Below, piece by piece: positions 36,314-52,969 of a DNA stretch of 64,000 bases (the stretch's first letter is position 1; every line of letters starts with the position of its first letter). The notes beneath the pieces are model-generated. The model did not search any database. It saw only the letters and a program-made list of their open reading frames with translations, and was not told the DNA's origin. Made by a program: the position numbers and the translations under genes. The stretch spans positions 209,998 through 273,997 of IMG/VR virus record IMGVR_UViG_3300034104_003795; one strand, written 5' to 3'.

Positions 36314-36351
36314 ATCATATAAATATTGGAGATTATTGTTTTGCAAAATTA

Positions 36352-36757: not shown

Positions 36758-37510
36758 TTATTTTTTAAATACCGAAACTCCTTTTTCTTTTACAACTTCT
36801 CCGGCACAATAATTAGCCCAATCAATAGATTCTTCTACATTATTAGAATCCAAATACCTGGATACAAATCCGGCTACAAATGTATCACCCGCTCCACTTA
36901 CATCGGCATTTTGAATTCTTTTAGTTCCAATTATCTTACCTCTATAACTTGCTCCCCTACCGTCCAACGTAATGATACATTTATTATATAACCAATCAGT
37001 ATCTCTAATAATAGAATCATTATTTTGAGCTTCAAATCTGTTTATTTTTATAAAGGATGTGTTTTTACACCAATCACCTAAATGCTTTTTGGTATCTACT
37101 ATCGTAAATTTGGCCATAGATGATATCTTATCAATATCTTCTTCGGTTAGGAATCCCTTACAATAATCCGATATAACAACCGCATCATATTTTACCAAAT
37201 CCGGCAAATCGTAGATATCAATTCTATTTGTAGTATCATTTTCATCAACTCGCAAATATAATTCATTTGTATCTTTGTTTACATATCGTGTTTTAGTAAT
37301 ATTACCTTTATCAAAATATGTATCAACATCCAATCCCATAGCTTCTAAATTAGATGCTGTGTTGCCCGCCATTCCTTTACTCCAAACTTTTAATTCATCT
37401 ATTGGTAAGAAAACTGGTCCATTTCCTTCTGGAGATTTTCTACTTGTTATGCCATACCAAAAAATATCGGTACAAACCTCTCCAATAACTAAAACTTTAT
37501 ACTTACGCAT
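36758..37510 (-). CDS. HldE/RfaE-type heptose-7-phosphate kinase domain (PfkB/ribokinase family), stand-alone
   Basis: VLVIGE...D.F.YG..SRKSPE..PV, GMAGNTASNL, VVISDYCKG, DVSGAGDTFVAGF. Confidence 0.85.
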   Translation of the reverse strand: MRKYKVLVIGEVCTDIFWYGITSRKSPEGNGPVFLPIDELKVWSKGMAGNTASNLEAMGLDVDTYFDKGNITKTRYVNKDTNELYLRVDENDTTNRIDIYDLPDLVKYDAVVISDYCKGFLTEEDIDKISSMAKFTIVDTKKHLGDWCKNTSFIKINRFEAQNNDSIIRDTDWLYNKCIITLDGRGASYRGKIIGTKRIQNADVSGAGDTFVAGFVSRYLDSNNVEESIDWANYCAGEVVKEKGVSVFKK

Positions 37511-37892
37511 TATGTATTAAATTTGAAGTACTGAATCCTTCTATTTTTTCAAAGTATTTAATTTCTTTGGCAAATTCTTTACCTATTATTTTTTTATTCT
37601 TATACTCATCACCAATTACAAAAAAATCAGGATTGTATCTTTTAATTTGTTCTTCTAATTGTTTATCACTTCCAAATATTACAACTATATCAACACCTTC
37701 TATTTGCATTAAGTTAAACACTCTTTGACCTTCGGTATGAAAAGGTCTATCAGTTCCTTTTAGTTCTTTTACTCTAATATCAGAATCAATACCAATAACC
37801 AATTGGTCACCTAATGATTTTGCGTATTCAATTAGTTTAAAATGACCGTAGTGTAAAATATCAAAACAACCGTTAATCCAAACTTTTTTCAT
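37503..37892 (-). CDS. HldE/RfaE-type heptose-1-phosphate adenylyltransferase domain, stand-alone
   Basis: VWINGCFDILHYGH, LVIGIDSD.RVKELKG.DRPF, VIGDEY, GFSTSNLI. Confidence 0.85.
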   Translation of the reverse strand: MKKVWINGCFDILHYGHFKLIEYAKSLGDQLVIGIDSDIRVKELKGTDRPFHTEGQRVFNLMQIEGVDIVVIFGSDKQLEEQIKRYNPDFFVIGDEYKNKKIIGKEFAKEIKYFEKIEGFSTSNLIHNA

Positions 37893-39049
37893 TATAAGAA
37901 TTTTTCCAACTCTTTTATTACCATTTCAGATGTAATACTTTTAGTACATTCAAATTGTCTTTCAGTATCTTTATGGTCAGGACACCAATTCCAATCACCG
38001 GCATCCAATTTAACTCTATTAAAACATCCTTCACATTTTCCGTCAGGTGCACCAATTCTAATACAATCTTCCATCTCTGCCCATCTATAAGAGAATCCAC
38101 TTATTAATACCGTTGGTACATCTAATGCCCAACTCAACCAACTCAAACCACTACCAATACCAATAAATGCTTTTGATTTTTTCATTTCATCCATTACTAA
38201 TTCAATTGGACCGTTTGGATGATGAATTACTCCTATTGGTAATTTATTTCCCATATAGTTATCACCTTCTTTAGAAAGTAATTTTACTAAATAACCCCTA
38301 CCAATCAACCAATCAACTACTTCTTGCCAACCGGTTGGATTGTTCCAAAATTTAGATTGCGCAGTACCATAAGTTGCAATACAAACCTGTTTAATATCAT
38401 TATCTATTTTTACAGGTCTTTGTTTTACTTTTGGTTTTATTTCTTTAAATTCTAACCCAAGTATATCAGAACACATTTTTTGCATTGTTACTGATTTTGG
38501 GTCTGCTGGATTTTTGAATCCATTTACCGAACCATTTTCATTATAAAATAGTCCAACCGAATACATCGCATATAAATTAGGAACAGGTGTACCAGGTTGT
38601 ACAAACTCAATATCAGGATATTCTCCTAAAAACATATCGTTCATAAAGGTAGATACTATTACTTCACATTTATGCTGCTTTTTAAATTCTTGTACATAAG
38701 GTATCCAGGCTAAACTATCTCCCAATGCTTTTGAATCCATTGCAATATAAACTCTCTTACCTTCGGCGTTAAATACCATACTATACCATTCTACGCCATT
38801 TTCGTAAATAACAATTTTCCATTCAATAAAATACTGAATACTACATCTACACCAACAATTGTTATCTATGCTTGTTGTATAGCAAATTTGACCGGTTTTA
38901 TTATTAATAAAATCAACTTTATAATTTGCCTTCTTTGGTCCTTTAATTTCTACAAAAGGACCATTAATAAAATGTATAAGTACATTGTTATTTATTTCCC
39001 TAATGCTTTTATTATTTTTTTTAAGATTATCGTAAATCATTAACTCCAA
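37892..39049 (-). CDS. Autotransporter-type protein O-heptosyltransferase (Aah/TibC family)
   Basis: SKALGDSLAWIPY, FIGIGSGLSWLSWA...VLISGFS, and C-terminal four-Cys iron-finger CEGC...WCPDHKDTERQFECTKSIT, matching the TibC/Aah WCP.HK.T.RQFECT..IT motif. Confidence 0.85.
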   Translation of the reverse strand: MELMIYDNLKKNNKSIREINNNVLIHFINGPFVEIKGPKKANYKVDFINNKTGQICYTTSIDNNCWCRCSIQYFIEWKIVIYENGVEWYSMVFNAEGKRVYIAMDSKALGDSLAWIPYVQEFKKQHKCEVIVSTFMNDMFLGEYPDIEFVQPGTPVPNLYAMYSVGLFYNENGSVNGFKNPADPKSVTMQKMCSDILGLEFKEIKPKVKQRPVKIDNDIKQVCIATYGTAQSKFWNNPTGWQEVVDWLIGRGYLVKLLSKEGDNYMGNKLPIGVIHHPNGPIELVMDEMKKSKAFIGIGSGLSWLSWALDVPTVLISGFSYRWAEMEDCIRIGAPDGKCEGCFNRVKLDAGDWNWCPDHKDTERQFECTKSITSEMVIKELEKFL

Positions 39050-41208
39050 GTTTTTACTGTTTGGTCTATAAGAGAATATCCTTCGGATTGTTTACAATAT
39101 ACTTTATTTGTTGTATATCTAAGCTTTGGTTCTTTGTAAAACACATCAGTAAGCCATAAATCAAATCCTTCCCACGGCGTATCATTGAATCTATCAATCC
39201 ACCATTGTTTAGTTCGATTTGGTATTAAGTATGCATGTGCTAAATCTTGATTTGCTGCAGTTTTACTGAATAGTTCATCAACTTTTTCTTTATTTCTAGA
39301 ACTATTATTTGCCAATCCAACATAGTAAACATCATCTCTTTCCGATATAAAACAAGCCTTATTTACTATATCCACAAATTCTTCTAAACCGGTATAAATA
39401 AATGCATCTGCTTCAAATATCAAAGTATAATCATATTCATCGCTCATTGTTTCCAAAGCCTTTCTATGAGCAGAAAAACATCCATAATGTCTGCCAGTTA
39501 AAGGTCCTAATCCATTTCCAAAATTACCAGGTTTATCTGATATATGTTCTGGTCTTTTACAATGTTCGGATGGTGGAGTTTGGTCATATGGTTTGTTTAC
39601 CATTGGTAGATAATCAATACCATATTTTGATAATTGTTTTAAAGATGCTCTACTCACTCTTTCTCTAACATCATCTGGTCTAGTTAATAGGTGTCTAACT
39701 TGTATTTTTGGTTTTCTACGAATAAATGAACGAAATCCTTCTTTAAATTGCCCATAGAAGAATTCATTTGCCGCTTGTGTAACTCCGTGAAATACACCAT
39801 AATCATCACCACTTACAATTCCACCTGGTTTAACTTTATTATACCAAAATTGTAAATCTTCTTTTAATGCATCGTAACTATGACCAGCATCTAACATTAT
39901 ATAATCTATACTTCCATTTGCAAACTGATTAGATGCATTTTTAGAAGTATCTTTAATCATATTGATATTATCATAGTTATCTGATAATATTGTGTTATCA
40001 ATAAATTCATAAAAGATATCACCATTAAATGAACCAACAATTGTTTGATGTATATCTTCATCATCAGTTCCTTTCCAAGTATCTACCGTTGTGAACTTTA
40101 TGTTCTTTTTAGATTCTCTAATTTTTTCTGCTAAATAATTTGTTGATTTACCAAACCATGCACCTACTTCTACAAACACATCATCATTTCCCGCACTTTC
40201 TACAACCTCATCATAAAGTTCTCTATATGCAAACCAACCAGGAATTTCATTAAATTCAGGTTGTAATTTTTCTAAAATAATTCTTTTGGTAAGTTTTAAA
40301 TCATCATTGATATAAGTTACCAATGAGTTATTATCGTATGTATCCAAATATGTATGTAAATTTCTAAAGATACATGGTAATTTATACGATAGTGCTTCTT
40401 TTATAGAAAGTGGATTTAATTCCAATATAGATGAAAAGTAAAAAAGGTCACATGCTGCATAGAATGTATCAACATCATCACGCTCTCCCCATATTACACA
40501 ATTTTCAGGTTTATGTTTCATTAAAGGTAACCAATAATGTTCATAGTTCATAGCTTGGTTTCCAACAAAGTGAAACTTAATTTTATATTTTTCTAATTGC
40601 CTAGCTATTGAAAATATTTCACCCTGATTTTTACCAGGTGAAAATAATCCAACCATTAAAACATGTTTCCATTCAGAATCTAATCCCAATTGTTGTTTTG
40701 CAATTTGTTTATCAAAAACATATTCACTAATAGGATATTCCCATAGAGTAGTTTCAACTCCTAAATTCGCTTCATCAAACTTTTGTTTACTCCATTCAGA
40801 AACCAAAACATAACGGTCTGGTTGATATATAATTTCAGATGGTGTTGTAAACGAACCATGTGTTGTTGCCAAAATAAAATAAGACCTATCCTTTGTAAAG
40901 ATACTATCTAAAACGTAGGTTGGTAAATCAAATTGTGGTATTTCTTGGAAATGTATAACATCTGGATTAAATTTTTCAATTACATCCAATATCTTAGTCT
41001 TATCCTCACCCAATGTGTGAACTACTGCTAATTTTTTTATTCTATTTTTTTGAACAACAAACGCATCACCGCCGCTGTTGTTTATTTCAACCACTTCAAT
41101 ATCGAAATCATTAACAAAATGTTCGATTTGTTTATAGGTGTATTGGGGCTGTCCTCCTGTTGATAAGTGGGGACAGACGTAAAGTAACTTTTTTCTTTCT
41201 GTTTTCAT
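39040..41208 (-). CDS. Tri-domain fusion: GT-B (GT4-like) glycosyltransferase + class I SAM methyltransferase + GT-A (GT25-like) domain
   Basis: PHLSTGGQPQY...KNQGE...CDLFYFSSILELNPLSIKEALS; FVEVGAWFGKST...YIMLDAGHSY...VKPGGIVSGDDY; HYGCFSAHRKALE...LIFEADA. Confidence 0.8.
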   Translation of the reverse strand: MKTERKKLLYVCPHLSTGGQPQYTYKQIEHFVNDFDIEVVEINNSGGDAFVVQKNRIKKLAVVHTLGEDKTKILDVIEKFNPDVIHFQEIPQFDLPTYVLDSIFTKDRSYFILATTHGSFTTPSEIIYQPDRYVLVSEWSKQKFDEANLGVETTLWEYPISEYVFDKQIAKQQLGLDSEWKHVLMVGLFSPGKNQGEIFSIARQLEKYKIKFHFVGNQAMNYEHYWLPLMKHKPENCVIWGERDDVDTFYAACDLFYFSSILELNPLSIKEALSYKLPCIFRNLHTYLDTYDNNSLVTYINDDLKLTKRIILEKLQPEFNEIPGWFAYRELYDEVVESAGNDDVFVEVGAWFGKSTNYLAEKIRESKKNIKFTTVDTWKGTDDEDIHQTIVGSFNGDIFYEFIDNTILSDNYDNINMIKDTSKNASNQFANGSIDYIMLDAGHSYDALKEDLQFWYNKVKPGGIVSGDDYGVFHGVTQAANEFFYGQFKEGFRSFIRRKPKIQVRHLLTRPDDVRERVSRASLKQLSKYGIDYLPMVNKPYDQTPPSEHCKRPEHISDKPGNFGNGLGPLTGRHYGCFSAHRKALETMSDEYDYTLIFEADAFIYTGLEEFVDIVNKACFISERDDVYYVGLANNSSRNKEKVDELFSKTAANQDLAHAYLIPNRTKQWWIDRFNDTPWEGFDLWLTDVFYKEPKLRYTTNKVYCKQSEGYSLIDQTVKTWS

Positions 41209-41260: not shown

Positions 41261-41539
41261 TTAGGATTCATAAGAAATAGTACCATCCGCTAGGTTTATT
41301 TCACCATTAGGATACTTTTTTTGTAAATCTGATATGCTGTTTTCTAGTTTGAGTGCAAGTAAATCAAATTTTTCTTCGGTTTCTTTTTTAATAGCTTCGA
41401 ATTTTTCGATTTCAGTTTTAAACTCTCTTATTTTAAAACTTATTTCTCCCACTTGAAATATCAACATACTAAGCTCTGACTGAGTATTGTTTATGTAATC
41501 TAGTGTGTCTTGTGATAATTTTTCTTTAATTTGTGACAT
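41261..41539 (-). CDS. Small coiled-coil protein (92 aa)
   Basis: Heptad-rich; KYPNGEINLADG end shared with 36352..36714. Confidence 0.7.
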   Translation of the reverse strand: MSQIKEKLSQDTLDYINNTQSELSMLIFQVGEISFKIREFKTEIEKFEAIKKETEEKFDLLALKLENSISDLQKKYPNGEINLADGTISYES

Positions 41540-41575: not shown

Positions 41576-43573
41576 TTATTCAAAAACAGCAGATGCACAA
41601 TTTCTACATATAGTTTCGTATGATTGTTTTATCTTTTGGATATGTTCTTCATTACCCCAAAAATCTCTTAATTCTTGTGTCTGTAAGTTTCCAAATTTAA
41701 AATCAAAATCATAATCGTTACAACATAGGAAAGCATCACCATTTGCGTTTACATGCACCCATCCGATTGGTCTACCACCAACTTCTCTACCATTACCACA
41801 ACCGATAACTTTTTTACCTTCATTGTTTTTCATTAAGTTTCGTTGTATCGCCGGACCGTTTGTTATAACTTCATCCAATAATCCCGCTCTATCAATAAGG
41901 TAAGGTACTGTGAATATATTTACACCAGGAAATAATTCTCTTGCTTTTTTCTCTTGCTGAACTAATTCTCCACTTTGTACATTTAAGTCAATATCCGATG
42001 GAAATTGCTCTCCTTTCTCTAACCATCCACCCTTATTACCAAACGATAATTCATGTACACCATTTATCTGAATAGAGAACGCCTTTCTTTGAACCATTTC
42101 AGGTAATTGCTCTACTGCGTATTTAATGTTTGATATTAATTTATCAAATTGTTTTATATTAATACCACTTCGTTTACTCCAAGTTTCTGCATCAAATGCC
42201 GGAGTATTTAAACATATACCACTTAAACAATCCTGATATTCTTTTAATATATCAACTTTTTCAGGTGTTAATGGAATACCATTTGAAAGTACCATTGTTA
42301 CCAATTTATACTTTCTACATATTTTTAATATTTCTTCAAAATGTGGATACAAAAGAACTTCGTTGTAATGTGCTGTATAGAATCCATTGAATGATTTACT
42401 AACCAATCCATCCGGTCTTTCTCTTTCATCTATAAGATTTTTTATAATTTTTTCAAATAGTTCCGGACTCATTACCGCTTTACCTTCGGTTGGATTGCCT
42501 TTATATTTTACAGGACAATACCAACACTTTGCATTACATACGCCATATGGGTCTATTTGTAAGTTTGTAATTTTATATTTGTTAAAATCATTTTTAATTT
42601 TACTCTCATCAGTTTGTTCAATTAAAATAGATTTATTTGCAGTTTCACATATTTCTTTCCAATAATAAGAAGAAGCATATTTTTCACTTATATTTAATGG
42701 TTCGTTGTATGGAAGTTTATCAGTAAAAGCTCCTTTATAAAATAAACCCTTTGAATACGAATGTATATGAGTTGAATCCGCTACAACTCCTGCATTGTGT
42801 AGTATAGGATATTTTTCTACTTCCGAAATATCACCAGTTACCCACCCAAAATCCAATCGTTCATCTACTATCGTTTCATGTCCCGCTAACCAAGCATTCC
42901 AAAGAAGTGCCCACATTCCCGCAGTCCATTTTTGTATTGGATAATCATATTCACTTTTCTTAACATGCAAATGTTCAGTATCACAAAAATATTTATATAG
43001 ATTTATACTATCGGTTTCTACTTTATCCCAAAATTCATATGTTGTGTTTTTAACAATATATTGTGCTCCACCTGAATTGTTATTTAGTAGTTTGGGTATT
43101 AACGGGTCTATTCCAACTATTTCACACATCTTTTTATAAATGTGTTCACCCTTACCTATTATATAATCATAATTTATATAAAATTTAGTATTAGATAAGT
43201 ACCAGCTATTACCCCTTATCATATCATCAAATTTGGGTGTCTTTGTCAAAACTATATCCGAATCATGTAAAAATAAAACATCATCTTGTATTTCAGTTCT
43301 TGCTGCAATATGTTGCTTCATCAAATTGAAATAAATAGATGGTTGATATCCTTTATCAGTTCTAGTATCATTATAAAAGAAAAAACGAACACTATTATAA
43401 TGTAGCATCAATTTTCGCCATTCGTCAGGAATTACACCATTTTCTATTCCACAAACTATATCAATGTAGTTTGGGTTTACTCCCATTTTTTTAAAGTTAT
43501 TAATTAAAACTTCAACTTGCCAAGTATAATAAGTGATTGCCGGTTGGCAACATATATAACGTAATTTTTTCAT
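41576..43573 (-). CDS. Fusion: N-terminal GT-A-like (DxD) putative protein O-glycosyltransferase + radical SAM + SPASM/twitch domain
   Basis: N-term YYTWQVEVLINNF...YQPSI...LFLHDSDIVL; radical SAM CNAKCWYC; C-term CGN...WVHVNANGDAFLCCND...FGNL...CRNC. Confidence 0.75.
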   Translation of the reverse strand: MKKLRYICCQPAITYYTWQVEVLINNFKKMGVNPNYIDIVCGIENGVIPDEWRKLMLHYNSVRFFFYNDTRTDKGYQPSIYFNLMKQHIAARTEIQDDVLFLHDSDIVLTKTPKFDDMIRGNSWYLSNTKFYINYDYIIGKGEHIYKKMCEIVGIDPLIPKLLNNNSGGAQYIVKNTTYEFWDKVETDSINLYKYFCDTEHLHVKKSEYDYPIQKWTAGMWALLWNAWLAGHETIVDERLDFGWVTGDISEVEKYPILHNAGVVADSTHIHSYSKGLFYKGAFTDKLPYNEPLNISEKYASSYYWKEICETANKSILIEQTDESKIKNDFNKYKITNLQIDPYGVCNAKCWYCPVKYKGNPTEGKAVMSPELFEKIIKNLIDERERPDGLVSKSFNGFYTAHYNEVLLYPHFEEILKICRKYKLVTMVLSNGIPLTPEKVDILKEYQDCLSGICLNTPAFDAETWSKRSGINIKQFDKLISNIKYAVEQLPEMVQRKAFSIQINGVHELSFGNKGGWLEKGEQFPSDIDLNVQSGELVQQEKKARELFPGVNIFTVPYLIDRAGLLDEVITNGPAIQRNLMKNNEGKKVIGCGNGREVGGRPIGWVHVNANGDAFLCCNDYDFDFKFGNLQTQELRDFWGNEEHIQKIKQSYETICRNCASAVFE

Positions 43574-43596
43574 AACTTTTAAAATTAATTTTTATT

Positions 43597-45045
43597 TTAC
43601 AAACACAATGCACAATTAACTCCAATTGCAGAAGGAGTAAACAATATATAATTATTTGGTCCAGGATAAGCTCCTAATCCAACCACAGACCACGTTTCTC
43701 CAGCATAGGATACGCAACCAGGACTACTTCCCGCAATAGCCTCAAGTGTATATTGAGCTCCGGTATATGCTCCTGCACCAGTACAAGGTTCATAATCCCA
43801 ATATTCATATACAACAGCCGATGTTGTTGTTGTGGTTGGTGCAGATGGACACGAACTACAATTCGTTCCTACATAACTAGAACCATCACCCAAATCAATA
43901 TCAAATGAAGGACCAAATGTAATACCAGTTAATCTTACACAAACATATGCGGTAGCAGTTTCAAATACACTATTAACTACCTGGTCAACGGTAAATCTAA
44001 CAACACCGGCACTTATAGCAGTATCACAGTATTCAGCGCTAAAATAGAAATAAGATGGCCCTGCGGTTGTGGTTGTTGTAGTTGTTGGTGCAGCTGTGGT
44101 TGTTGTAGTTGTTAGCGGTGTTTCGCAACCATACGCTATACATTCCTCATATGATGTGTAAATACCATTTCCAGTTCCAACATTTGTACATGTACCAAGA
44201 ATACAATCCCAATCCAAAGATGCAGCTGCTGTTGTAGTTGTAGTTGTTGTAGGCGCTTCCGTAGTTGTAGTTGTTGTAGGCGCTTCCGTAGTTGTAGTTG
44301 TTGTTGCAGCTTCCGTTGTAGTTGTAGTAGTAGCTGCTTCCGTTGTAGTTGTAGTAGTAGCTGCTTCCGTTGTAGTTGTAGTAGTAGCTGCTTCCGTAGT
44401 TGTAGTTGTAGTTGGTGCCGCGGTTGTTGTAGTTGGTGCCGCAGTTGTTGTAGTTGTGGTTGTAGTTGTAGTTGTGGTTGTAGTTGTGGTTGTAGTTGTG
44501 GTTGTAGTTGTGGTTGTTGTAACAGAAAGACAAGTACCCTTATCGTTTAATACACCATCATTACTTATAATATAATAGTTTGTTCCATCTGAATAATATC
44601 CATTTGATGCAATCGTAGTTAATCCACTATTTGTAAAAAGTTTTGTACTTTCGGTTAGTGTTACTCCCCCATACGAATAATACGTTGTTGGGGAAAGTGC
44701 AAAATCATAACAAGAGTTTCCAGCAGAAGATGCATCATATCCTAAACTAAATGAAGATGGTGCTAATGTTGTAGTAGTTGGTGCGTTAGTTGTAGTTGTA
44801 GTTGTGGTTGTTGTAGTTGGTGTAAATTCACTAGTACCCATACAATCACTACTACCACCTTGTAAAAGTTCTATGGTTGCACCAGCTGGTGCTGCTATAC
44901 TACCGGGTTGTGCTTCTATCACTACCGAATTTAAAGTTTCACTTAAAAAAATAGATGGTCCAGTAAAGCCTTCACACTCTAACCAAGACACATTTCCACT
45001 AGTACTACTAGCTAACGTTACTCTATATATGTTTACAGTTGGCAT
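43597..45045 (-). CDS. Mucin-like Thr-rich protein with Cys-containing domains (482 aa), probably virion-exposed
   Basis: Run of ~26 Thr plus six (EA[A/P]TTTTTT) units, further T-runs, Cys-rich domains between them; no signal peptide evident. Confidence 0.75.
   Translation of the reverse strand: MPTVNIYRVTLASSTSGNVSWLECEGFTGPSIFLSETLNSVVIEAQPGSIAAPAGATIELLQGGSSDCMGTSEFTPTTTTTTTTTTNAPTTTTLAPSSFSLGYDASSAGNSCYDFALSPTTYYSYGGVTLTESTKLFTNSGLTTIASNGYYSDGTNYYIISNDGVLNDKGTCLSVTTTTTTTTTTTTTTTTTTTTTTTTTTAAPTTTTAAPTTTTTTEAATTTTTTEAATTTTTTEAATTTTTTEAATTTTTTEAPTTTTTTEAPTTTTTTTAAASLDWDCILGTCTNVGTGNGIYTSYEECIAYGCETPLTTTTTTAAPTTTTTTTAGPSYFYFSAEYCDTAISAGVVRFTVDQVVNSVFETATAYVCVRLTGITFGPSFDIDLGDGSSYVGTNCSSCPSAPTTTTTSAVVYEYWDYEPCTGAGAYTGAQYTLEAIAGSSPGCVSYAGETWSVVGLGAYPGPNNYILFTPSAIGVNCALCL
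44230..44520 (-). repeat. 27-nt tandem repeats and ACN-codon run encoding poly-Thr
   Basis: gttgtagttgtagtagtagctgcttcc x3 and gtagttgtagttgttgtaggcgcttcc x2; 44443-44520 is all Thr codons. Confidence 0.9.
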
Positions 45046-45055
45046 TTATTATTAA

Positions 45056-45514
45056 TTAAAAAGGTATTTGACCTAATATTTCAGTTGGCCATTTTTCTCT
45101 TATTTGAACCAAATTAGTTATATCTGAAAAATCAATATTTGTCAAATCTCTTAATTCTTGTTTTTTTGTAACTATTTCTTGAATTAATGTTTGATTTCCA
45201 GTTTCCAATACCCTCATATATTGTAAATCCAAATCAGGAAATAATTCACTCCTTTTGTATCTCACATAATTTAAAAATAATTCTTTTGCCTTTTCTAAAT
45301 TTAAAGATGGAATCGCAGTTGAACCATTCTCATCATCAAAATTAAAATCATAACAAAAATTAAATGGATAATCAATTTGAGAATCATCATACATAAAAAC
45401 ATAATTTGAATTCAATGGAATTACATTTTTGATTATAAAATCAATAGTTTCTTCATTTGATGATGTCCATTTGATTTCACCATTTTTTTCACTTATAATT
45501 ATTTTTGGTTTCAT
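45056..45514 (-). CDS. Tail fibre assembly chaperone-like protein (152 aa)
   Basis: C-terminal VRYKRSELFPDLDLQYMRVLE...KKQELRDLT...WP pattern typical of phage fibre assembly chaperones; downstream of a large tail gene. Confidence 0.6.
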   Translation of the reverse strand: MKPKIIISEKNGEIKWTSSNEETIDFIIKNVIPLNSNYVFMYDDSQIDYPFNFCYDFNFDDENGSTAIPSLNLEKAKELFLNYVRYKRSELFPDLDLQYMRVLETGNQTLIQEIVTKKQELRDLTNIDFSDITNLVQIREKWPTEILGQIPF

Positions 45515-45529
45515 AAATTATTTATTTTT

Positions 45530-48500
45530 TTATCTTGATAATACCACAAAATCAACAATTTCAGGTGACTGATGTCCTCCTAGATTACCACCGATATATG
45601 TTGTTGCAATACCAGGACTACTATGATTAGGTCTTTCTATTCTAAAAGAAAATCCAGTAGTACTTTTTCCAGTAATTACAGCAATACTTCCAACTTCCTG
45701 AGTAGCGTATGTTAAATTTGATGTTGTAAATAAAATAATATAATCATTGGAATCTAATGCGGTTGTAAATACGATATCATAGATATTGAATGACCCTATA
45801 CTAAATGAGGTACTAATATTATAACGATTTAGAATAGTATATTTTGTAGTATCAGTAATTCCTCCACCATTATATCTAATTGTTCCAAACGCTTTTACTG
45901 CTGGTGGGTATCCATATCCATTACTAAATCTGGATATTGCTCTATCCACCATTAAACTACCCGTAATTTCATTTGAGAAACTATAAGAACCACTTATACC
46001 ATCTCTTACTCTTAAATACTTATCATCTGCTAAAACGGCTTGGAAACCACCACCGTTTACAACAGTACCCGCGGATACCGTTTTTATTGTTATGGTTCCA
46101 GTAGAAGATAAAACAAAACTAGTTTCTGCTTCCGAATCAATTCCAAATGGCGGATATGATGGTAATGATGTATCTATACTTTGGTTTTGCACAACAACTC
46201 TTAAAGTTAAATAATATGTTACACCTTGTTGTAAATCCGCAATTAATGAAAATTTAGTCGCTGGTAGCTCCATTTGGGCTGCAGCCGCAAAGTAATATGT
46301 ATCCCAACCAAATCCATTCCAAACCTGATAAGTTTGTATGCTCCCATTTGCATATGCCGTTGCGTAATTTGATTGCCCAACAAATTCGGTAAAAAATTGC
46401 GGTGCATGGCCTGTTTTAGTTAGTTGTAAATTTACGTTTATACCAGCTGCCGCATCACCAGTAGCCCTTGCATAGCTGGAACCGTTAAATGGCATTGTGT
46501 AAGTTATAATGTGTTGTCCAGATGCTCCAGCGGTGAATGAACCTCCAGATGATGGTATTATATAATAGTCATAGGAAATAAGTCCGTAAGATGGAGGAGC
46601 ATATGTTCCATCATTTGGAACTGCATTAGTTTGTAATGACGAAGTTGATACAGTTGGTAAAGTTGCAGAAGAATATGTTACACCAGTTGGGGATGGTAGT
46701 GTTAATTGTGTATTTGCAAAGAATCTTAAACTACCAGAATCATCAAATACGGCAATAGATTCGGATGGGTCTGAATACAATTGTATATTTTGATTTGCTG
46801 ATATTATAGAACCTTCTCCGATTGTCCATCCACCAATCTGTCCATCATTTGAGCTAATTGAACCCTGAATGGTTAAATCTTCTCCATTCCAAATCAATGA
46901 ACCAGATGTACCTATTAAAGATACTTTTGGTTGAGATGCATCGAATCCTATAAAAATACCAGGATTATTAAATCCTTGCACTTGTGATTCCGTTACCCAA
47001 CTACCAGGACCTATACTAGAACTTATTTGTCCGATTGAAATGTATGGATTTGCATTTGAACCACTTTCATTTGCGTTAAGAACAATAAGTGCGTTTGCAC
47101 CCTTTGCACCAATATTGATACTTTTATCAACATATTGCTCAACTGCAAATAATACATCAGTTGCTACCGAACTAAATTGTGCACCAAATGTAGTCCAGTT
47201 TGCGTTTGGTGGACTGCCCCAAATTGTACCAAGTTGTCCATTCTTACTCGTATCATTTACCAAATAATAGGTACTACCTTGTTTTACAATATCTCTCCTT
47301 TCAGTTGTATGGAAATAATTTGTACTGGTACTAAAGAGACCTCTATATACTACACCGGCTCCGTTCGCTCCGTTTGTTCCACTTACGCCAGATGTACCAC
47401 TTACACCAGATGTACCTGCTGCTGCATATACTGACCAACTATTAGTTGCGTTTGGTGGATATCCTGTATCAATATTAGTATTATTTGTTGAAGTATGTGA
47501 AACTCCACAAATATAACTTGCTCCACCATATGTTACGGTATCATCTTCGTAATATGTTGTTGCAGTTTGCCAAGCTCCTCTAAAAGAACCTTCTGGTATT
47601 CCAGGTTGTCTTTGTCTAATACTACCAACTATCGTTAATTGGTCTCCATCCCAAAACATGCCTTTGCCAGATGTACCAGTTGTTTTAATTGAAAAACGTC
47701 CTGTTGTACCATTTGTACCATCTTCATATAATCCCAAGAAAACACCAGGTCTATTATATCCAATAATTCCTGGAGTTGTCAATGATGTTCCACTTGTACC
47801 CGCAGTTCCTTGTGTACCGGTTTGACCAATTGCAATGTATGGGTCTGGTCTTCCACCTGCAATTACAATATTTGCAAATGCACCACTACCATCTTTAGTA
47901 CCAACATTAATTGTATTCTTAACATATGATTCTTGGAATATTGCAATTTGTGCTGCAACAAAGAATTCTTCATTTCCTAAATACTGCCAATATGCATTAT
48001 CACTTGTTGTACCGGTTGGTGCTTGAATTCCTGCACCCGTACCAGGACCACTTTCTTGAATTGCACCATAGTATTGTGTTACGTTTCCATTTGTAGCAGG
48101 GTCTGGATGTATTACGGCATCTCTACGATTACCACTTATATCTGAACCTATGTAATCTATGTCATTTTTCCAAATTCCTCTCATCACAATTCCAGGTCCA
48201 GTATTTCCTTCATATTGAACCGATAACGATTGTGTTTTATATAAAAAATCTCTACCTTCGCAATCAATCTGATATACGATAAATGCGGTTTGATTTACTT
48301 CAGGATTTAACCATTGAGTAATTCCACCCATAACCGCGGGAGAACCACTTACAAATGAACCAGCGGTTAAACTTCCAGATAAAGTAATGTGCGCAGATTT
48401 TGCGTAAATACTTACTCTACATTTTTCTTTCCATCCGGCTTCACCATACATATCAGTATGAGTTTCTTGCCCTGCAATTAAAGAAGCACTATTAACTAGT

Positions 48501-51500
48501 TCAACATCACCTCTATAAACATTTATAGTTGTTGGTGTTAAATTGTATTCAATTTCACCAGATACACGATATATAATTGATGAGTTTTCATTTGTTAATG
48601 TTGCATTATATGGTGCAGGTGCAGTTATTTGAGAACTAAATGATTGTGAATAGAATTCAGATTTTCTACCATTTTCAAAATCAACTTTATAAACAACCGT
48701 TCCCGCAGTATTTACCGCCGGTGCTACCCATCCAGAAACATTTCCTATTTCAGCAGGATTTCCTAATAATCTATTCTGTGGATTTACAGTAATGTATGAT
48801 GACTTTGAATGTATAGATGCAGAATAATATCCTAAATTTCCAATTGGTAAACCGGAATTAGGTCCATATTCATAATATACAACTTGCGAAGAAACATACG
48901 AAGATGTGTGTATTAAAGGTACTCCTGCTTTAAATGCTCTAATTTGTGTTCCACTACCGGTAAAGGCAGTTTCCCATAGAGAAACTTGAATAGAAGTGTT
49001 TTCGTTTGTTACGTTTGCAGTAAAAGAATCCGCTCCAGCTTTTACACCAAATATAGTAATCTCATCAACCGCTCGTATTATATCAGATGCAGAACCATCT
49101 CTCATTTCAACTCTGAAAACTGCAGTTTCGCCTGCAGAAGTTGCATCGGAAGAACCAATGCTGATTTGGTCAGTAGTACTTATACCATAACCCAAATCTC
49201 CATATGTTGCAGAATCTGGATCGTACTTAAACCATTGATAAAATGCCTGTGAACTTGTTATATTAATTGGTGTTGCAGTAAACGTTATATCTCCAACAGG
49301 TGAAATAACTACCGTATCACCATCAAAGTTTACAGTGTTTGTACTTGTTGATAGTTTAACTGTTCTTGCTTTTACAGCATCCGAATTTTTAGTGAAACTT
49401 TGTGTTGCAAATAAATTAACCGAACCAGTTCTATGTCCCGGTAATAAAGAATATGGATATACTCTTAAATTATAGAAAGCACTTGCCGATACATACGGTG
49501 GTAAGAAGTTTGTATAATTCGCACTACCGATTCTCGTTGGTGTTGTAGAATTTGGAGATGAAATGGATGCCGTTTGTATGTTACTTCCAGTAATCGATTG
49601 GAAATACCAAGTACCTCTTTGTTGAGAACTCGTATATATTAGATACTCATTTCCTTCCTTTAATTGTATTGATGTACTAGCCGGTGCATATGTTCTTATA
49701 TATCCAGTTTCAAATGCGGATAATATTGCATTTTGTGGACTGATTAATATTTCAATTGGTGGTGCCCCATCAACCGCTTTGGTAAAGTTTTGAACTAAAC
49801 TTTGTGTATATTTTGATGAAGTGAAATATGGATGAATTAAGAGGTCATAAGTTAAACTCGCACTTAACTCAGTCATATTATTAATTCCAGTTAGTAATAA
49901 CGATGAGGTATTGTTAAAATCAACGGAACCGGTTGATATCATTGATTGTGTCACCGTATTTAACCAGAAATTACCAGGTTGCTTTGATGAACTAAATGCC
50001 AAATACCTTGCACCTTGTTTTAATTTCAATTCAGTATTTGCCGGTGTATATGTTGCAACATCTCCCTTTGCATTTGCATTTAATGTTACATTGGAAGGTG
50101 TCAATTCAAATACTATACTTTCATCACCAGGTTTACCTTCAGGTACAATAGTAAATGTTTTATCAATACTAATTTCGGTTAATGTGTAAGGTTCGGTATA
50201 AGTAAATGTTGCAACTAATACTTTGCTTTGAGATAACGGACTTCCAATAAACGCAGATGGTAATCTTGCAGGTAAACTTCTACCAGCTTCATCCGCTGCA
50301 ACAATTGATATATTGGAATCTTTACTTTGACTAACCCAATACAACCAATATTCTGGTGCAAAATCTGTATTAATTGACATTGATGGATATACCAAAATAG
50401 ATGCCGATATTGGATTCTCATTTGTACCTCTTAAATAAAACGATGCAGTTGCAGATGCGGATACCGGTCTAAAATCAGTTTCATTTCTAAAATTAATTGT
50501 AAAAGTATCGGTATTGTATGTCACAACCGGTGTATCAAGACCATCTTGCAAATCTTCTAAAATTTGTGATGCTAAAACCGATGCCGATGTATTAAATGCC
50601 CAATCCGATGCCGCTGATGCCGAAGATATTAAATAAATTGTTCTTCTCTTATCAATTGAATCTCTATTAAATGTTGCATTAAAATTAATTTCACCAGTAC
50701 CCAACGTACCTTTTGTCAATCCTTGAACAAATCCACTAGCGGATGCATATTGTAAATTTACAAATTTTTCAAAAGGAGCAGAACCGCTAAGTACGTGAAG
50801 TTGTATTAAATTCCACCCTCTATCTGGTCTTGAACCACTATAAAGTTCAATATCATTTATACCATCAATTCTTACTGCCTGAATTTCTAAAGATGCAGTA
50901 CTACTATTTCTAATTTGAGTTCCTCTATAAGGTCTAATAATATGATTAACTCCACCAAACCCATCTAATACTGCGGTGATAGTTACCGTATCGGTTACGC
51001 CTTCACACTCTCCCGTAAATGTTACCAACTGAACATCTATATCACTTCTACTACCAGTAAAATTCCCAACAGTTAAAACCGGTATATCTGGATTTGTTAA
51101 ATTTAATGTACCAGGAAATGTACCACCAGCATATTGCGATGCCGATAAAACATTTCCAAAGAAATCAATAGAAGATGATGTGAAGTTTACAGAACCAGTT
51201 AATAAAGTTTTTTGAATATTAAATGCAATTGCAGTTGGTGGTATAGGTTGCGAACCCGAATCAAATTGAAAATATAAAGAAGTTGGATTTAAACTTAATT
51301 TTTTCTCAATTCTTTGAATATTTCCACCATCAAATTCTTTAGATGCTTCTACATTAACCGGAATGTAATTACCATTTATATCATAAAATTTAAAAAGATA
51401 ATCAAATCTTTCAGATACCAAACTTCTAGGTACTGATTGTACCACCGTTAATTCGTTAGGTGAGAATGATGTTTCTTGAGATGCTTTAATACTAATATCT

Positions 51501-52969
51501 GAAATATACCATTCAGTTCCTTTTACATCTACATAAAGTTTTGCATTATCAATTTGTTCAGCTTCAAAATTTTCAGATATCAATACCTTTTGTAATACCT
51601 GATTATTTGCCTGAATTTTAGTAATCAGTTGTTGAACCGGAACTGTTACAGAAGGAAATGCACTTCCTAATGAATTTGAAGATTGTCTAGAACCACTTAT
51701 GTAAAACTCAATATAGTCATCGGTTGATGTTATAGATTTTTTTCTTACATTGAAATCCAAAGTATATTCTCCACCGGTATTTAAACTAAACGATTGCGTT
51801 GTATGGAAATACCCTACACCACTTGCAACATTTAGTTCGGCAGAATTATACAAATAATTTTGATTAAATGCTACCGTATTATTAGAAGATGATACCCAAT
51901 AGTTTGAAATTATATCACCGGTTAGGATACCATAATTTTCTTCATTCTTATCAGTAGTATTATAATCTTTTAATATTTCATTTGATTCTAACAATACCTT
52001 TTGAACAAACTCAAAATCGCCAATCTTTGACCTAGACTTTCGGTAGACATCAACCGATACAACATCACCAATAAAAGTTGTTAAATCAGATATTGTAATT
52101 TTTGCAAATGAGCCAGTTAATGCCGTTTTTAAATTAGAAGTACCTTCAAGATGTTGAAATGATGCGGTGTATCCTATATTATCAAAACTTTCTACGATAC
52201 CATTAATTGTATATGGGTCTGATGTTAGTACTTCTTTATTAGTAACTATTTGTGTAATTAGTGGATTATAGTTTAATCCCGGAACCGATAATCTTGTATT
52301 TAATACGGAACCCGTCCAATTGGTATTATCCTGTAAGGTTAATCTATATAATGTTGGTAATGTATAATCACTTAACTTTTGTCCAGATTGTGGAGTTATA
52401 GCAGTACCGTCCAAACTACCAGTTTGCACTATTGTTGGTATCGTTGTTGAAAACAAAGGTTTTACTAATTCATCAATTGTTACCCTAGGTCTTCTATAAA
52501 ATCTAACTCTATCTTCGTTGGCTAAAAGTTTATTAACTTTTATTGTTTTTTGCCACTTAACATTATATACACCCTTCCAATCATCCGGAATATCTCTTAC
52601 AACTTTACCATCATCCAAATATTCTTTAAGTTCACCTAAAATAGTAATAGTAGCATCTCCAATAGGAGTATCATCGTAAATATGTACCGATACAATCTTT
52701 GAAGTACCCTCATAGTATTCAGGAATACCATTACCAGGTTCCCAATATATAGGATTACCCTCAACATCCAAAATTTGTATTTTAATTTCGGTTGTTTCTT
52801 TTAAAAAAGGACTACCTTCTATTAGAAATCCATTTTTACCACCAGTAAATGTTTCTTTTAATTCGGTTATTCTGAAATATGTTGAGTTTGCATCGGTATC
52901 AGAAACAAACGTTCCGAAAGAACTAAGCGGTTGTGGTAATACTTCTCCGTATTTTTTTATCAATGGCAT
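45530..52969 (-). CDS. Very large tail/baseplate-associated structural protein (2479 aa)
   Basis: ORF track; beta-rich, Ser/Thr/Gly-rich; repeated LTNEN.S and RG.W...Y...D.V modules; short GTSG tracts; C-terminal AVKAFGTI..Y.I..N.Y fibre-like end. Confidence 0.75.
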   Translation of the reverse strand: MPLIKKYGEVLPQPLSSFGTFVSDTDANSTYFRITELKETFTGGKNGFLIEGSPFLKETTEIKIQILDVEGNPIYWEPGNGIPEYYEGTSKIVSVHIYDDTPIGDATITILGELKEYLDDGKVVRDIPDDWKGVYNVKWQKTIKVNKLLANEDRVRFYRRPRVTIDELVKPLFSTTIPTIVQTGSLDGTAITPQSGQKLSDYTLPTLYRLTLQDNTNWTGSVLNTRLSVPGLNYNPLITQIVTNKEVLTSDPYTINGIVESFDNIGYTASFQHLEGTSNLKTALTGSFAKITISDLTTFIGDVVSVDVYRKSRSKIGDFEFVQKVLLESNEILKDYNTTDKNEENYGILTGDIISNYWVSSSNNTVAFNQNYLYNSAELNVASGVGYFHTTQSFSLNTGGEYTLDFNVRKKSITSTDDYIEFYISGSRQSSNSLGSAFPSVTVPVQQLITKIQANNQVLQKVLISENFEAEQIDNAKLYVDVKGTEWYISDISIKASQETSFSPNELTVVQSVPRSLVSERFDYLFKFYDINGNYIPVNVEASKEFDGGNIQRIEKKLSLNPTSLYFQFDSGSQPIPPTAIAFNIQKTLLTGSVNFTSSSIDFFGNVLSASQYAGGTFPGTLNLTNPDIPVLTVGNFTGSRSDIDVQLVTFTGECEGVTDTVTITAVLDGFGGVNHIIRPYRGTQIRNSSTASLEIQAVRIDGINDIELYSGSRPDRGWNLIQLHVLSGSAPFEKFVNLQYASASGFVQGLTKGTLGTGEINFNATFNRDSIDKRRTIYLISSASAASDWAFNTSASVLASQILEDLQDGLDTPVVTYNTDTFTINFRNETDFRPVSASATASFYLRGTNENPISASILVYPSMSINTDFAPEYWLYWVSQSKDSNISIVAADEAGRSLPARLPSAFIGSPLSQSKVLVATFTYTEPYTLTEISIDKTFTIVPEGKPGDESIVFELTPSNVTLNANAKGDVATYTPANTELKLKQGARYLAFSSSKQPGNFWLNTVTQSMISTGSVDFNNTSSLLLTGINNMTELSASLTYDLLIHPYFTSSKYTQSLVQNFTKAVDGAPPIEILISPQNAILSAFETGYIRTYAPASTSIQLKEGNEYLIYTSSQQRGTWYFQSITGSNIQTASISSPNSTTPTRIGSANYTNFLPPYVSASAFYNLRVYPYSLLPGHRTGSVNLFATQSFTKNSDAVKARTVKLSTSTNTVNFDGDTVVISPVGDITFTATPINITSSQAFYQWFKYDPDSATYGDLGYGISTTDQISIGSSDATSAGETAVFRVEMRDGSASDIIRAVDEITIFGVKAGADSFTANVTNENTSIQVSLWETAFTGSGTQIRAFKAGVPLIHTSSYVSSQVVYYEYGPNSGLPIGNLGYYSASIHSKSSYITVNPQNRLLGNPAEIGNVSGWVAPAVNTAGTVVYKVDFENGRKSEFYSQSFSSQITAPAPYNATLTNENSSIIYRVSGEIEYNLTPTTINVYRGDVELVNSASLIAGQETHTDMYGEAGWKEKCRVSIYAKSAHITLSGSLTAGSFVSGSPAVMGGITQWLNPEVNQTAFIVYQIDCEGRDFLYKTQSLSVQYEGNTGPGIVMRGIWKNDIDYIGSDISGNRRDAVIHPDPATNGNVTQYYGAIQESGPGTGAGIQAPTGTTSDNAYWQYLGNEEFFVAAQIAIFQESYVKNTINVGTKDGSGAFANIVIAGGRPDPYIAIGQTGTQGTAGTSGTSLTTPGIIGYNRPGVFLGLYEDGTNGTTGRFSIKTTGTSGKGMFWDGDQLTIVGSIRQRQPGIPEGSFRGAWQTATTYYEDDTVTYGGASYICGVSHTSTNNTNIDTGYPPNATNSWSVYAAAGTSGVSGTSGVSGTNGANGAGVVYRGLFSTSTNYFHTTERRDIVKQGSTYYLVNDTSKNGQLGTIWGSPPNANWTTFGAQFSSVATDVLFAVEQYVDKSINIGAKGANALIVLNANESGSNANPYISIGQISSSIGPGSWVTESQVQGFNNPGIFIGFDASQPKVSLIGTSGSLIWNGEDLTIQGSISSNDGQIGGWTIGEGSIISANQNIQLYSDPSESIAVFDDSGSLRFFANTQLTLPSPTGVTYSSATLPTVSTSSLQTNAVPNDGTYAPPSYGLISYDYYIIPSSGGSFTAGASGQHIITYTMPFNGSSYARATGDAAAGINVNLQLTKTGHAPQFFTEFVGQSNYATAYANGSIQTYQVWNGFGWDTYYFAAAAQMELPATKFSLIADLQQGVTYYLTLRVVVQNQSIDTSLPSYPPFGIDSEAETSFVLSSTGTITIKTVSAGTVVNGGGFQAVLADDKYLRVRDGISGSYSFSNEITGSLMVDRAISRFSNGYGYPPAVKAFGTIRYNGGGITDTTKYTILNRYNISTSFSIGSFNIYDIVFTTALDSNDYIILFTTSNLTYATQEVGSIAVITGKSTTGFSFRIERPNHSSPGIATTYIGGNLGGHQSPEIVDFVVLSR

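Follow-up and report, generated by a model that had tools for sequence, protein, structure and literature searches.

We describe here a gene in IMG/VR virus record IMGVR_UViG_3300034104_003795, a 274-kb giant phage from lake water, of which the last 64 kb (positions 209,998 to 273,997) form the stretch analysed, called the window below. The gene encodes a 665-residue protein in which a predicted GT-A glycosyltransferase (GT) domain is joined to a predicted twitch-type radical S-adenosylmethionine (SAM) domain, and it lies next to a gene for a protein dense in threonine. The reading we favour, with moderate confidence, is that the product is a cytoplasmic bifunctional enzyme that matures a phage glycoprotein, through O-glycosylation of Thr, radical tailoring of the sugar and extension of the glycan. 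A wider proposal, that mucin-type O-glycosylation operates in many tailed phages on Thr-tagged capsid, tail-tube or fibre proteins, with radical SAM chemistry on the protein-linked sugar in a subset of them, is offered only tentatively. The gene, the parts of its product and its upstream neighbour are as follows.

41576-43573, minus strand: GT-radical SAM fusion gene, 665 amino acids (aa).
42629..43573, minus strand: GT-A glycosyltransferase domain, aa 1-315, of predicted HPAT/SGT1-like fold, family phrog_4417 (from profile, model, Foldseek and conserved residues).
43256..43264, minus strand: DxD motif D104-S-D106 (from conservation and secondary structure of the model).
42797..42799, minus strand: H259, candidate third metal ligand of the GT-A site (from conservation, which suggests the role).
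41576..42628, minus strand: predicted twitch-type radical SAM domain, aa 316-665 (from PF04055, PF13186 and similarity to BtrN).
42515..42538, minus strand: CX3CX2C motif (C346, C350, C353), predicted ligands of the SAM-cleaving 4Fe-4S cluster (from invariance in relatives).
41597..41800, minus strand: putative auxiliary-cluster region, C592...C617-C618...C656-x-x-C659 (from invariance and alignment with the BtrN twitch).
43597..45045, minus strand: presumed acceptor, a 482-aa mucin-like protein (from poly-Thr composition and adjacency to the fusion gene).

The open reading frame (ORF) has exactly these boundaries, and every motif that a sequence-only reading of this DNA had singled out is present in the checked translation: CCQPAITYYTWQVEVLINNF at aa 8-27, the quoted pattern CCQPAITYYTWQ...NNF, YQPSI at aa 76-80, LHDSDI at aa 102-107 and CNAKCWYC at aa 346-353. 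The poly-Thr gene is likewise where that reading had placed it, with the fusion gene starting 23 bp past its stop. Contigs from independent lake metagenomes cover the fusion gene without indels, including the junction between both domains, so the fusion is real and not an artefact of assembly. The virus itself was found again, nearly unchanged, in many lake-water metagenomes from 2020-2024, and head, portal, terminase and tail-fibre genes are present in the window. A search for near-identical DNA among isolate phages gave no match. RNA data amount to a few short, low-depth contigs from one metatranscriptome, in which DNA may be included.

The N-terminal domain matches, over its full length, a phage family to which no function is assigned (phrog_4417; E 3.4e-63; residues 5-310 align with positions 2-290 of the 293-position profile); a Pfam search with residues 1-310 returned no match. 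An AlphaFold2 model of aa 1-315 has high predicted accuracy (predicted local distance difference test (pLDDT) 95.4; predicted template modelling score (pTM) 0.93) and a GT-A fold. DxD is the customary metal/nucleotide-sugar binding site of GT-A enzymes, and in the model D104-S-D106 stands in its usual position, directly after the strand formed by residues 99-103. In an alignment of 58 diverse relatives W18, Y76, D106, G169, Q171 and H259 are invariant and D104 is retained in at least 90%; across 75 further multi-domain members both D104 and D106 are invariant, and H259 is invariant or nearly so. Foldseek against the PDB gave 216 matches at E<=0.001; the 50 listed are GT-A enzymes without exception, and they are generic members of the fold (the UGGT catalytic domain, glycogenin, LARGE1, GlyE) at a template modelling (TM) score of about 0.5. 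A profile search of the domain against PDB sequences gave chance matches only, to TAL effector repeats and geminin. DNA glycosylation was considered and rejected, as the arabinosyl- and glucosyltransferases that phages are known to use on DNA have a GT-B fold, to which the GT-A fold here bears no relation.

The sequence-only reading had likened this domain to the plant peptidyl-Ser/hydroxyproline (Hyp) O-glycosyltransferases of GT95 and GT96. When the model of aa 1-315 was compared by Foldseek with the reviewed part of the AlphaFold database, Arabidopsis SGT1 came first (E 5e-11), with HPAT1-3, RDN1/2, PLENTY, NOD3 and Chlamydomonas SGT1 at ranks 2-9. These SGT1/HPAT-type matches (ranks 1-9; E 5e-11 to 3e-8, TM by query 0.58-0.68, with predicted models on both sides of the comparison) are followed by GT8 enzymes at about 0.5. 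Neighbours in the ESM Atlas are viral clusters with partial matches to Pfam HPAT, eukaryotic HPAT clusters and a bacterial cluster that combines PqqD with HPAT. The likeness thus stands as the nearest in predicted fold, but sequence-level membership in Pfam HPAT did not follow from it. Only two of the 58 family members match Pfam HPAT, with a best E of 1.3e-4, and a search of the phage's own 274-kb genome with Pfam HPAT and DUF7164 found nothing at E<=10. The domain is, as far as the models go, HPAT/SGT1-like in fold and probably a remote homologue of these enzymes, but no more than a candidate member of GT95 or GT96.

HPAT and SGT1 enzymes start O-glycans on hydroxyl amino acids in repetitive, extended segments, such as those of extensins and small peptides. 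The HPAT/RDN/PLENTY enzymes (GT95, PF23452) and SGT1 (GT96) share the GT-A fold with the phage domain over the whole of its length. Unlike them, the phage domain is soluble, lacks a membrane anchor and is only 12-17% identical in sequence; it is phage-encoded and here fused to a radical SAM domain, and its presumed acceptor is Thr in poly-Thr tracts, as against Hyp or Ser in the plant systems. Animal mucin-type polypeptide N-acetylgalactosamine transferases (GT27) are GT-A enzymes with a DxD/His metal site that start glycans on Thr/Ser tracts between folded modules. To these the phage domain bears a functional likeness, as a GT-A DxD/His enzyme that would work on Thr/Ser-dense linkers, but it has no lectin domain and no secretory pathway and is not a member of the family; GT27 enzymes are not among its leading structural matches.

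We collected a neighbourhood sample of 80 metagenomic viral loci, the best 80 of at least 594, which are 45-92% identical in the GT domain. The GT is a standalone protein in 71 of them. Multi-domain members add GT2/GT7C-type, GT6, GT11, GT25, GT29 and GT32-like glycosyltransferases as well as methyltransferases, and nearly all fusion partners are further glycosyltransferases or methyltransferases, as one would expect if an initiating enzyme had been combined with others that lengthen or decorate a glycan. Links to PqqD, a peptide-recognition element of pathways to peptides made on ribosomes and modified after translation (RiPPs), were seen twice: the bacterial Atlas cluster, from Pseudomonadota, joins an HPAT-like domain to it, and the annotators of Enterococcus phage 9183 recorded PqqD-family homology for its GT homologue (L094:4001-4870). 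This suggests peptide glycosylation by the HPAT-like fold outside phages.

The protein encoded upstream of the fusion gene is 29% Thr, with a longest run of 26 T and with TTTTTTEAA/EAP repeats, and is built of small, Cys-containing globular modules linked by poly-Thr. It matches nothing in Pfam or PHROG, and an Atlas search with its C-terminal module found only unnamed viral clusters, below a useful score. It is the only ORF with a poly-Thr tract among the 621 of at least 60 aa in the phage's own 274-kb genome, so that its position next to the fusion gene is far from chance. A repeat within its gene, at 44070-44870 of the window, reaches up to ~2400-fold summed contig depth in lake metagenomes and has many foreign joints there; this indicates that poly-Thr genes of ACN repeats are very common in lake communities. 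Because the repeat attracts cross-mapping, the exact length of the poly-Thr tract is unreliable, being either uncertain or variable.

The same arrangement recurs across the sample, in which 76 loci have upstream sequence and 73 could be scored downstream, over similar lengths of DNA; a poly-Thr ORF was here defined as one having at least 8 Thr within any 10 residues. A poly-Thr ORF on the same strand ends no more than 150 bp upstream of the GT gene in 57 of the 76, and one lies within 6 kb upstream in 68; downstream there is none in 73 loci. Altogether 91 poly-Thr ORFs were counted upstream and none downstream, and few tracts of Ser, Ala, Gly or Pro were seen in either direction. The sequence-only reading had named homologues occurring mostly without Ser/Thr-rich neighbours as evidence that would tell against it; what was found, an upstream poly-Thr ORF in 68 of 76 loci, is the opposite. 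The rule that the GT has a poly-Thr neighbour is strong, though not absolute. At least nine unrelated groups of poly-Thr proteins could be told apart, all with a build of folded and often Cys-rich modules with poly-Thr linkers; a virion structural protein (E 2e-199) and a major tail protein can be recognised among them.

Isolate phages extend this picture. By tblastn the GT domain is a standalone protein of ~290 aa in 77 isolate records, mostly from phages of Gram-positive hosts. The hosts of the nine records inspected belong to Enterococcus, Lactobacillus, Staphylococcus, Clostridium, Arcanobacterium and Chryseobacterium; in every record the GT gene is part of the structural module, and the gene just before it encodes a Thr tract. 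The Thr-tract proteins before the GT are these.

Enterococcus phage phiFL1A: major tail protein, with poly-Thr at its end.
Lactobacillus phage iLp84: capsid protein and a small protein.
Chryseobacterium phage MA9V-3: a protein of 429 aa.
RQ1 and TPWB06: major tail proteins.
phiCTP1: gp18.
Enterococcus phage 4995_1: capsid protein.
Lactobacillus phage Semele: two proteins, both upstream of the GT.
Enterococcus phage 9183: weaker Thr tracts, the weakest signal of the nine.

The GT gene thus tracks whichever gene bears the Thr tag, which is hard to explain unless the tag is the substrate. One could argue that the target of the GT is phage DNA, a polymer of the host surface or a small molecule, as many phage glycosyltransferases do modify DNA or host polysaccharides, and that adjacency merely reflects a position in the structural module. 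We hold this to be very improbable: the GT gene follows the Thr-tract gene, be it one for capsid, tail tube or a fibre-like protein, poly-Thr ORFs in the loci scored are found upstream and never downstream, and the nearest characterised relatives, SGT1 and HPAT, act on peptide hydroxyls. Judged solely from its relatives, the poly-Thr protein of the window is probably part of the virion. A complex prediction of the full enzyme with residues 160-215 of the poly-Thr protein scored 0.01 and was counted neither way.

In Staphylococcus phage RQ1 (L090:3229-3931) and Arcanobacterium phage TPWB06 (L092:3164-3926) the major tail protein ends with a short poly-Thr, and an overlapping ORF in another frame extends it with a much longer poly-Thr segment. 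From the two sequences this looks like a programmed frameshift, which would place a long Thr-rich extension on a fraction of the tail subunits.

The C-terminal half of the fusion protein matches Pfam Radical_SAM (PF04055; residues 342-489, 42.3 bits against a cut-off of 29.5) and SPASM (PF13186; residues 604-659, 40.2 bits against 21.5). In an alignment of 24 relatives C346, C350, C353, C592, C617, C618, C656 and C659 are invariant, and C454 is nearly so. The sequence-only reading had assigned a radical SAM/SPASM enzyme; the radical SAM part is borne out by motif and profile, but a full SPASM domain is not, as five conserved Cys follow the core instead of seven. Four of these fit the twitch pattern C...C...CxxC, with C617 and the CxxC pair aligned to the twitch region of BtrN, so the domain is predicted to hold one auxiliary cluster, twitch-like, and not two as in full SPASM. 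HygY, a sugar epimerase among the close twitch relatives, uses a Cys as hydrogen donor, and it is speculation on our part that the extra invariant C618 has such a HygY-like role.

BtrN, the 2-deoxy-scyllo-inosamine dehydrogenase of butirosin synthesis, is the closest solved relative by most measures. It leads a profile search of PDB sequences (2.9e-11, with core and twitch aligned), with the peptide epimerase YydG next at 4e-4, and it leads the structural alignment of the domain model (pLDDT 86.6) by VIA-align, with Z 19.5 and a root-mean-square deviation of 3.0 A over 227 of 246 residues; anSME follows at Z 17.2, the peptide maturases SuiB, ChlB, CteB and SkfB at 16.5-16.9 and DesII at 16.5. 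In Foldseek the leading matches are DesII (top, 3e-11), BtrN, SuiB, CteB, BlsE and anSME, and among reviewed models the ranking is less clear-cut, running TP_0285, AlbA, BtrN and then PqqE. The phage domain shares with BtrN (PDB 4M7T) the CX3CX2C core and one auxiliary cluster, but it is only 20% identical, ~100 residues longer, and has the extra invariant C618 and the near-invariant C454. Its partner, in fusion or from a neighbouring gene, is a protein glycosyltransferase; its setting is that of a phage glycoprotein, with no aminotransferase found in the genome, and its presumed substrate is a protein- or nucleotide-linked sugar where that of BtrN is an aminocyclitol. The BtrN equivalog model does not match the fusion protein. 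Its cysteine pattern and nearest similarity place the domain among the twitch enzymes of BtrN type, while low identity, the missing equivalog match and the gene context set it apart from BtrN orthologues. Part of its extra length is an insertion of ~26 residues (aa ~506-531), absent from relatives fused to N-acetylglucosamine (GlcNAc) transferases. No second radical SAM gene was found in the 274-kb genome.

BtrN and anSME are radical SAM dehydrogenases; BtrN, DesII and BlsE act on sugars or sugar-like rings, and these three and SpeY begin by abstracting hydrogen from a sugar carbinol carbon. By analogy with its nearest relatives, BtrN and DesII, we infer that the radical SAM half tailors a sugar. 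It could instead be that the GT glycosylates poly-Thr while the radical SAM half epimerises, oxidises or cross-links Thr of the peptide itself, much as RiPP maturases do, for example YydG/EpeE, anSME and the sactisynthases. In favour of this, anSME, SuiB, ChlB, CteB and SkfB have Z-scores of 16.5-17.2, YydG is the second sequence match, AlbA and PqqE stand high among the reviewed models, an HPAT-like domain is joined to PqqD in the bacterial fusion cluster, and PqqD-family homology was recorded for the phage 9183 homologue. BtrN, however, is first by both profile and VIA-align, with an E seven orders better than that of YydG; Pfam detects no RiPP recognition element in the fusion protein, and the single auxiliary cluster contrasts with the two of most peptide maturases in the clade. 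The distribution of the module, described next, also argues against action on the peptide, which we regard as unlikely.

The radical SAM module is far commoner as a standalone protein (~342 aa, 64-79% identical) than in the fused form. Loci L076 and L083 each have it as a gene of its own, next after a standalone GT. Six further standalone cases sampled on long contigs all have a GT homologue in the same locus; in five the GT gene lies immediately upstream, a 4-bp overlap is seen in four, and in four a poly-Thr ORF precedes the GT. The gene in the window is thus the fused form of a recurrent three-gene cassette for a poly-Thr protein, a GT and a radical SAM protein. Elsewhere the module follows poly-Thr genes either fused to a sulfotransferase (L089) or beside a GT2 gene (L086). 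Conversely, it is present in only five of the 80 GT loci, so the radical SAM step depends on the GT and not the reverse, as fits an optional tailoring step. That the module occurs only where a GT is present, that most poly-Thr/GT loci lack it and that it can be fused to a carbohydrate-type sulfotransferase all speak against a peptide maturase.

The same dependence would fit equally well if the radical SAM half acted before transfer, converting a nucleotide sugar into an unusual donor that the fused GT then uses, much as DesII acts on thymidine diphosphate sugars. DesII is the top Foldseek match, BlsE, an enzyme of nucleoside sugars, also ranks high, and fusion could serve to hand over an unstable donor. 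Yet BtrN rather than DesII is closest by sequence and Z-score, and fusion of the module to a glycan-acting sulfotransferase of PF03567 points to an attached glycan; tailoring of the donor seems improbable to us as well.

Related pairings were seen in other settings. Two proteins, P0093 and P0096, consist of a Skp1-type GlcNAc transferase domain (PF11397; E 1e-46 to 6e-51), of a GT-A family known for its action on a peptide hydroxyl, followed by a radical SAM domain 38-39% identical to that of the phage; their GT is of a different family and their context is bacterial (a deltaproteobacterial metagenome-assembled genome) rather than phage. At the P0096 locus (L085:14-7710) the gene is immediately preceded by genes of DUF2169/pentapeptide, DUF3540 and Tox-PAAR-like type, none of its neighbours is poly-Thr, and this type VI secretion-style neighbourhood hints at a different, bacterial use of the GT-radical SAM pair. 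On a phage-like contig (L086:2926-8127, with L087) a protein ending in poly-Thr is followed by a GT2 and then by two tandem radical SAM paralogues, of which the first has an N-terminal CxxCxxCC domain. In L097 (5001-7478) a 2-oxoglutarate-Fe(II) oxygenase of prolyl-hydroxylase type (PF13640) lies between the GT homologue and a standalone radical SAM gene, and the vicinity lacks a poly-Thr gene; as the fold is HPAT-like, phages of this kind could conceivably use a hydroxylated acceptor.

The reading we favour can be set out in three steps. Fold, conserved residues and very strong gene-neighbourhood evidence argue for the first, in which the GT-A domain would bind a nucleotide sugar through its DxD/His site and transfer a first sugar to the hydroxyls of Thr in the poly-Thr linkers of the mucin-like protein whose gene lies 23 bp upstream. 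The closest relatives and the gene coupling point to the second, in which the radical SAM domain would cleave SAM at the CX3CX2C cluster and, aided by the twitch cluster, abstract hydrogen from a carbinol carbon of the sugar, either protein-bound or still on its nucleotide carrier, to give a keto-sugar or an epimer. Synteny suggests a third, in which a GT4-methyltransferase-GT25 protein and a TibC-type heptosyltransferase, fed by HldE-like genes, would extend and decorate the glycan.

Several observations weigh against this reading. The fusion protein has no match to Pfam HPAT (PF23452, gathering score 23.9 bits), so the link to the plant enzymes is one between predicted folds, at TM 0.58-0.68 and 12-17% identity. 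Eight of the 76 loci have no reachable poly-Thr neighbour, among them L007, itself a fusion locus, and L076, L097 and L101. Since anSME, SuiB, CteB and SkfB score only slightly below BtrN, structure alone cannot fix the substrate of the radical SAM half. A sugar aminotransferase (PF01041) was sought in the phage genome and none was found, nor is there another obvious partner for a keto-sugar.

The enzymes of the third step belong to a glycan island around the fusion gene, whose other members are listed here.

45530..52969, minus strand: fibre-like protein of 2479 aa (synteny with locus L005).
45056..45514, minus strand: protein of 152 aa, phrog_20196 (PHROG; synteny with L005).
41261..41539, minus strand: helical protein of 92 aa that follows the fusion gene in related phages too (L005 and L006).
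39040..41208, minus strand: multi-domain glycan enzyme of 722 aa (Pfam; conserved in L005 and L006).
37892..39049, minus strand: TibC/Aah-type protein O-heptosyltransferase (TIGR04414; conserved in L005 and L006).
37503..37892, minus strand: nucleotidyltransferase, best match HldE domain II, heptose-1-phosphate adenylyltransferase (TIGR02199, CTP_transf_like).
36758..37510, minus strand: PfkB-family kinase, best match HldE domain I, heptose-7-phosphate kinase (TIGR02198, PfkB).

In the 722-aa protein a glycosyltransferase of GT1/GT4 type is joined to a Methyltransf_24/TylF-like methyltransferase and to a C-terminus with weak likeness to GT25, a composition that makes it a likely enzyme of glycan elongation and decoration. 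The heptosyltransferase exceeds the TIGR04414 equivalog cut-off (271.6 bits against 200, over residues 22-383); the nucleotidyltransferase (TIGR02199, E 4e-32; Pfam CTP_transf_like) and the kinase (TIGR02198, E 2e-26; Pfam PfkB) stay under theirs. HldE serves ADP-heptose synthesis, and from these family assignments 36758-39049 is apparently a second, heptose-based protein glycosylation module. Profile searches gave no family match for the 92-aa protein. In L005 and L006 the order is conserved as fibre-like protein, 152-aa protein, poly-Thr protein, GT-radical SAM fusion, 92-aa protein, GT4-methyltransferase-GT25 protein, TibC-type protein and HldE-like nucleotidyltransferase, and in L006 the HldE-like kinase is conserved as well. 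The island genes are closely packed on one strand, and the only strong terminator-like hairpin (53200-53172) lies upstream of the fibre gene. Scans for promoters and terminators were not enriched over shuffles, so an operon and its co-transcription are what we infer from this arrangement.

Phage-encoded glycosyltransferases that glycosylate the C-termini of capsid and tail-tube subunits of mycobacteriophages are reported by Freeman et al. (2023), as summarised in PMC12619734 and PMC13313380. The poly-Thr tracts of the isolate phages examined here likewise sit at capsid or tail C-termini. There is no Mycobacterium phage among the 77 isolate records with a phrog_4417-type GT, so the mycobacteriophage enzymes are of a different family, and the present system differs further in that the GT gene directly follows the acceptor gene, the signal is plain poly-Thr and a radical SAM step is sometimes added. 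Beside known phage virion glycosylation, the novelty lies in an initiating enzyme of plant-like type, an acceptor signal as simple as poly-Thr and the added radical SAM step. Our literature search, incomplete for subscription journals, found neither the GT family nor poly-Thr tags in phages nor the fusion described.

To our knowledge, virion glycosylation has so far been known only from mycobacteriophages, in which it affects immune recognition. If our reading is right, it extends to phages that infect Enterococcus, Staphylococcus, Lactobacillus, Clostridium and Bacteroidota, as well as to phages abundant in lakes, through a previously unrecognised system that spans small Gram-positive siphoviruses and freshwater jumbo phages, and it would bear on phage therapy, phage stability and adsorption. 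A poly-Thr tag read by one soluble cytoplasmic enzyme would be a simple rule, usable for glycoengineering in bacteria. In evolutionary terms, a lineage of plant cell-wall glycosyltransferases would be linked to a large phage family. New sugar chemistry on proteins may come to light with the radical SAM partner, which, if the assignment holds, would have no known forerunner among radical SAM enzymes in tailoring the glycan of a glycoprotein.

Two minor observations concern a further gene and the host. At 33398-36346 of the window, on the minus strand, lies a gene for a 982-aa protein with a nicotinamide mononucleotide adenylyltransferase-like N-terminus, a DUF5661 segment and a long unassigned remainder, the first part of which protein is 94% identical in L005. 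The spacer before the start codon of the fusion gene (43574-43596) consists of A+T only, without a Shine-Dalgarno-like sequence, and the nearest isolate relative of the GT domain, at 41% identity, is from a Chryseobacterium phage; together these might point to a host among the Bacteroidota.

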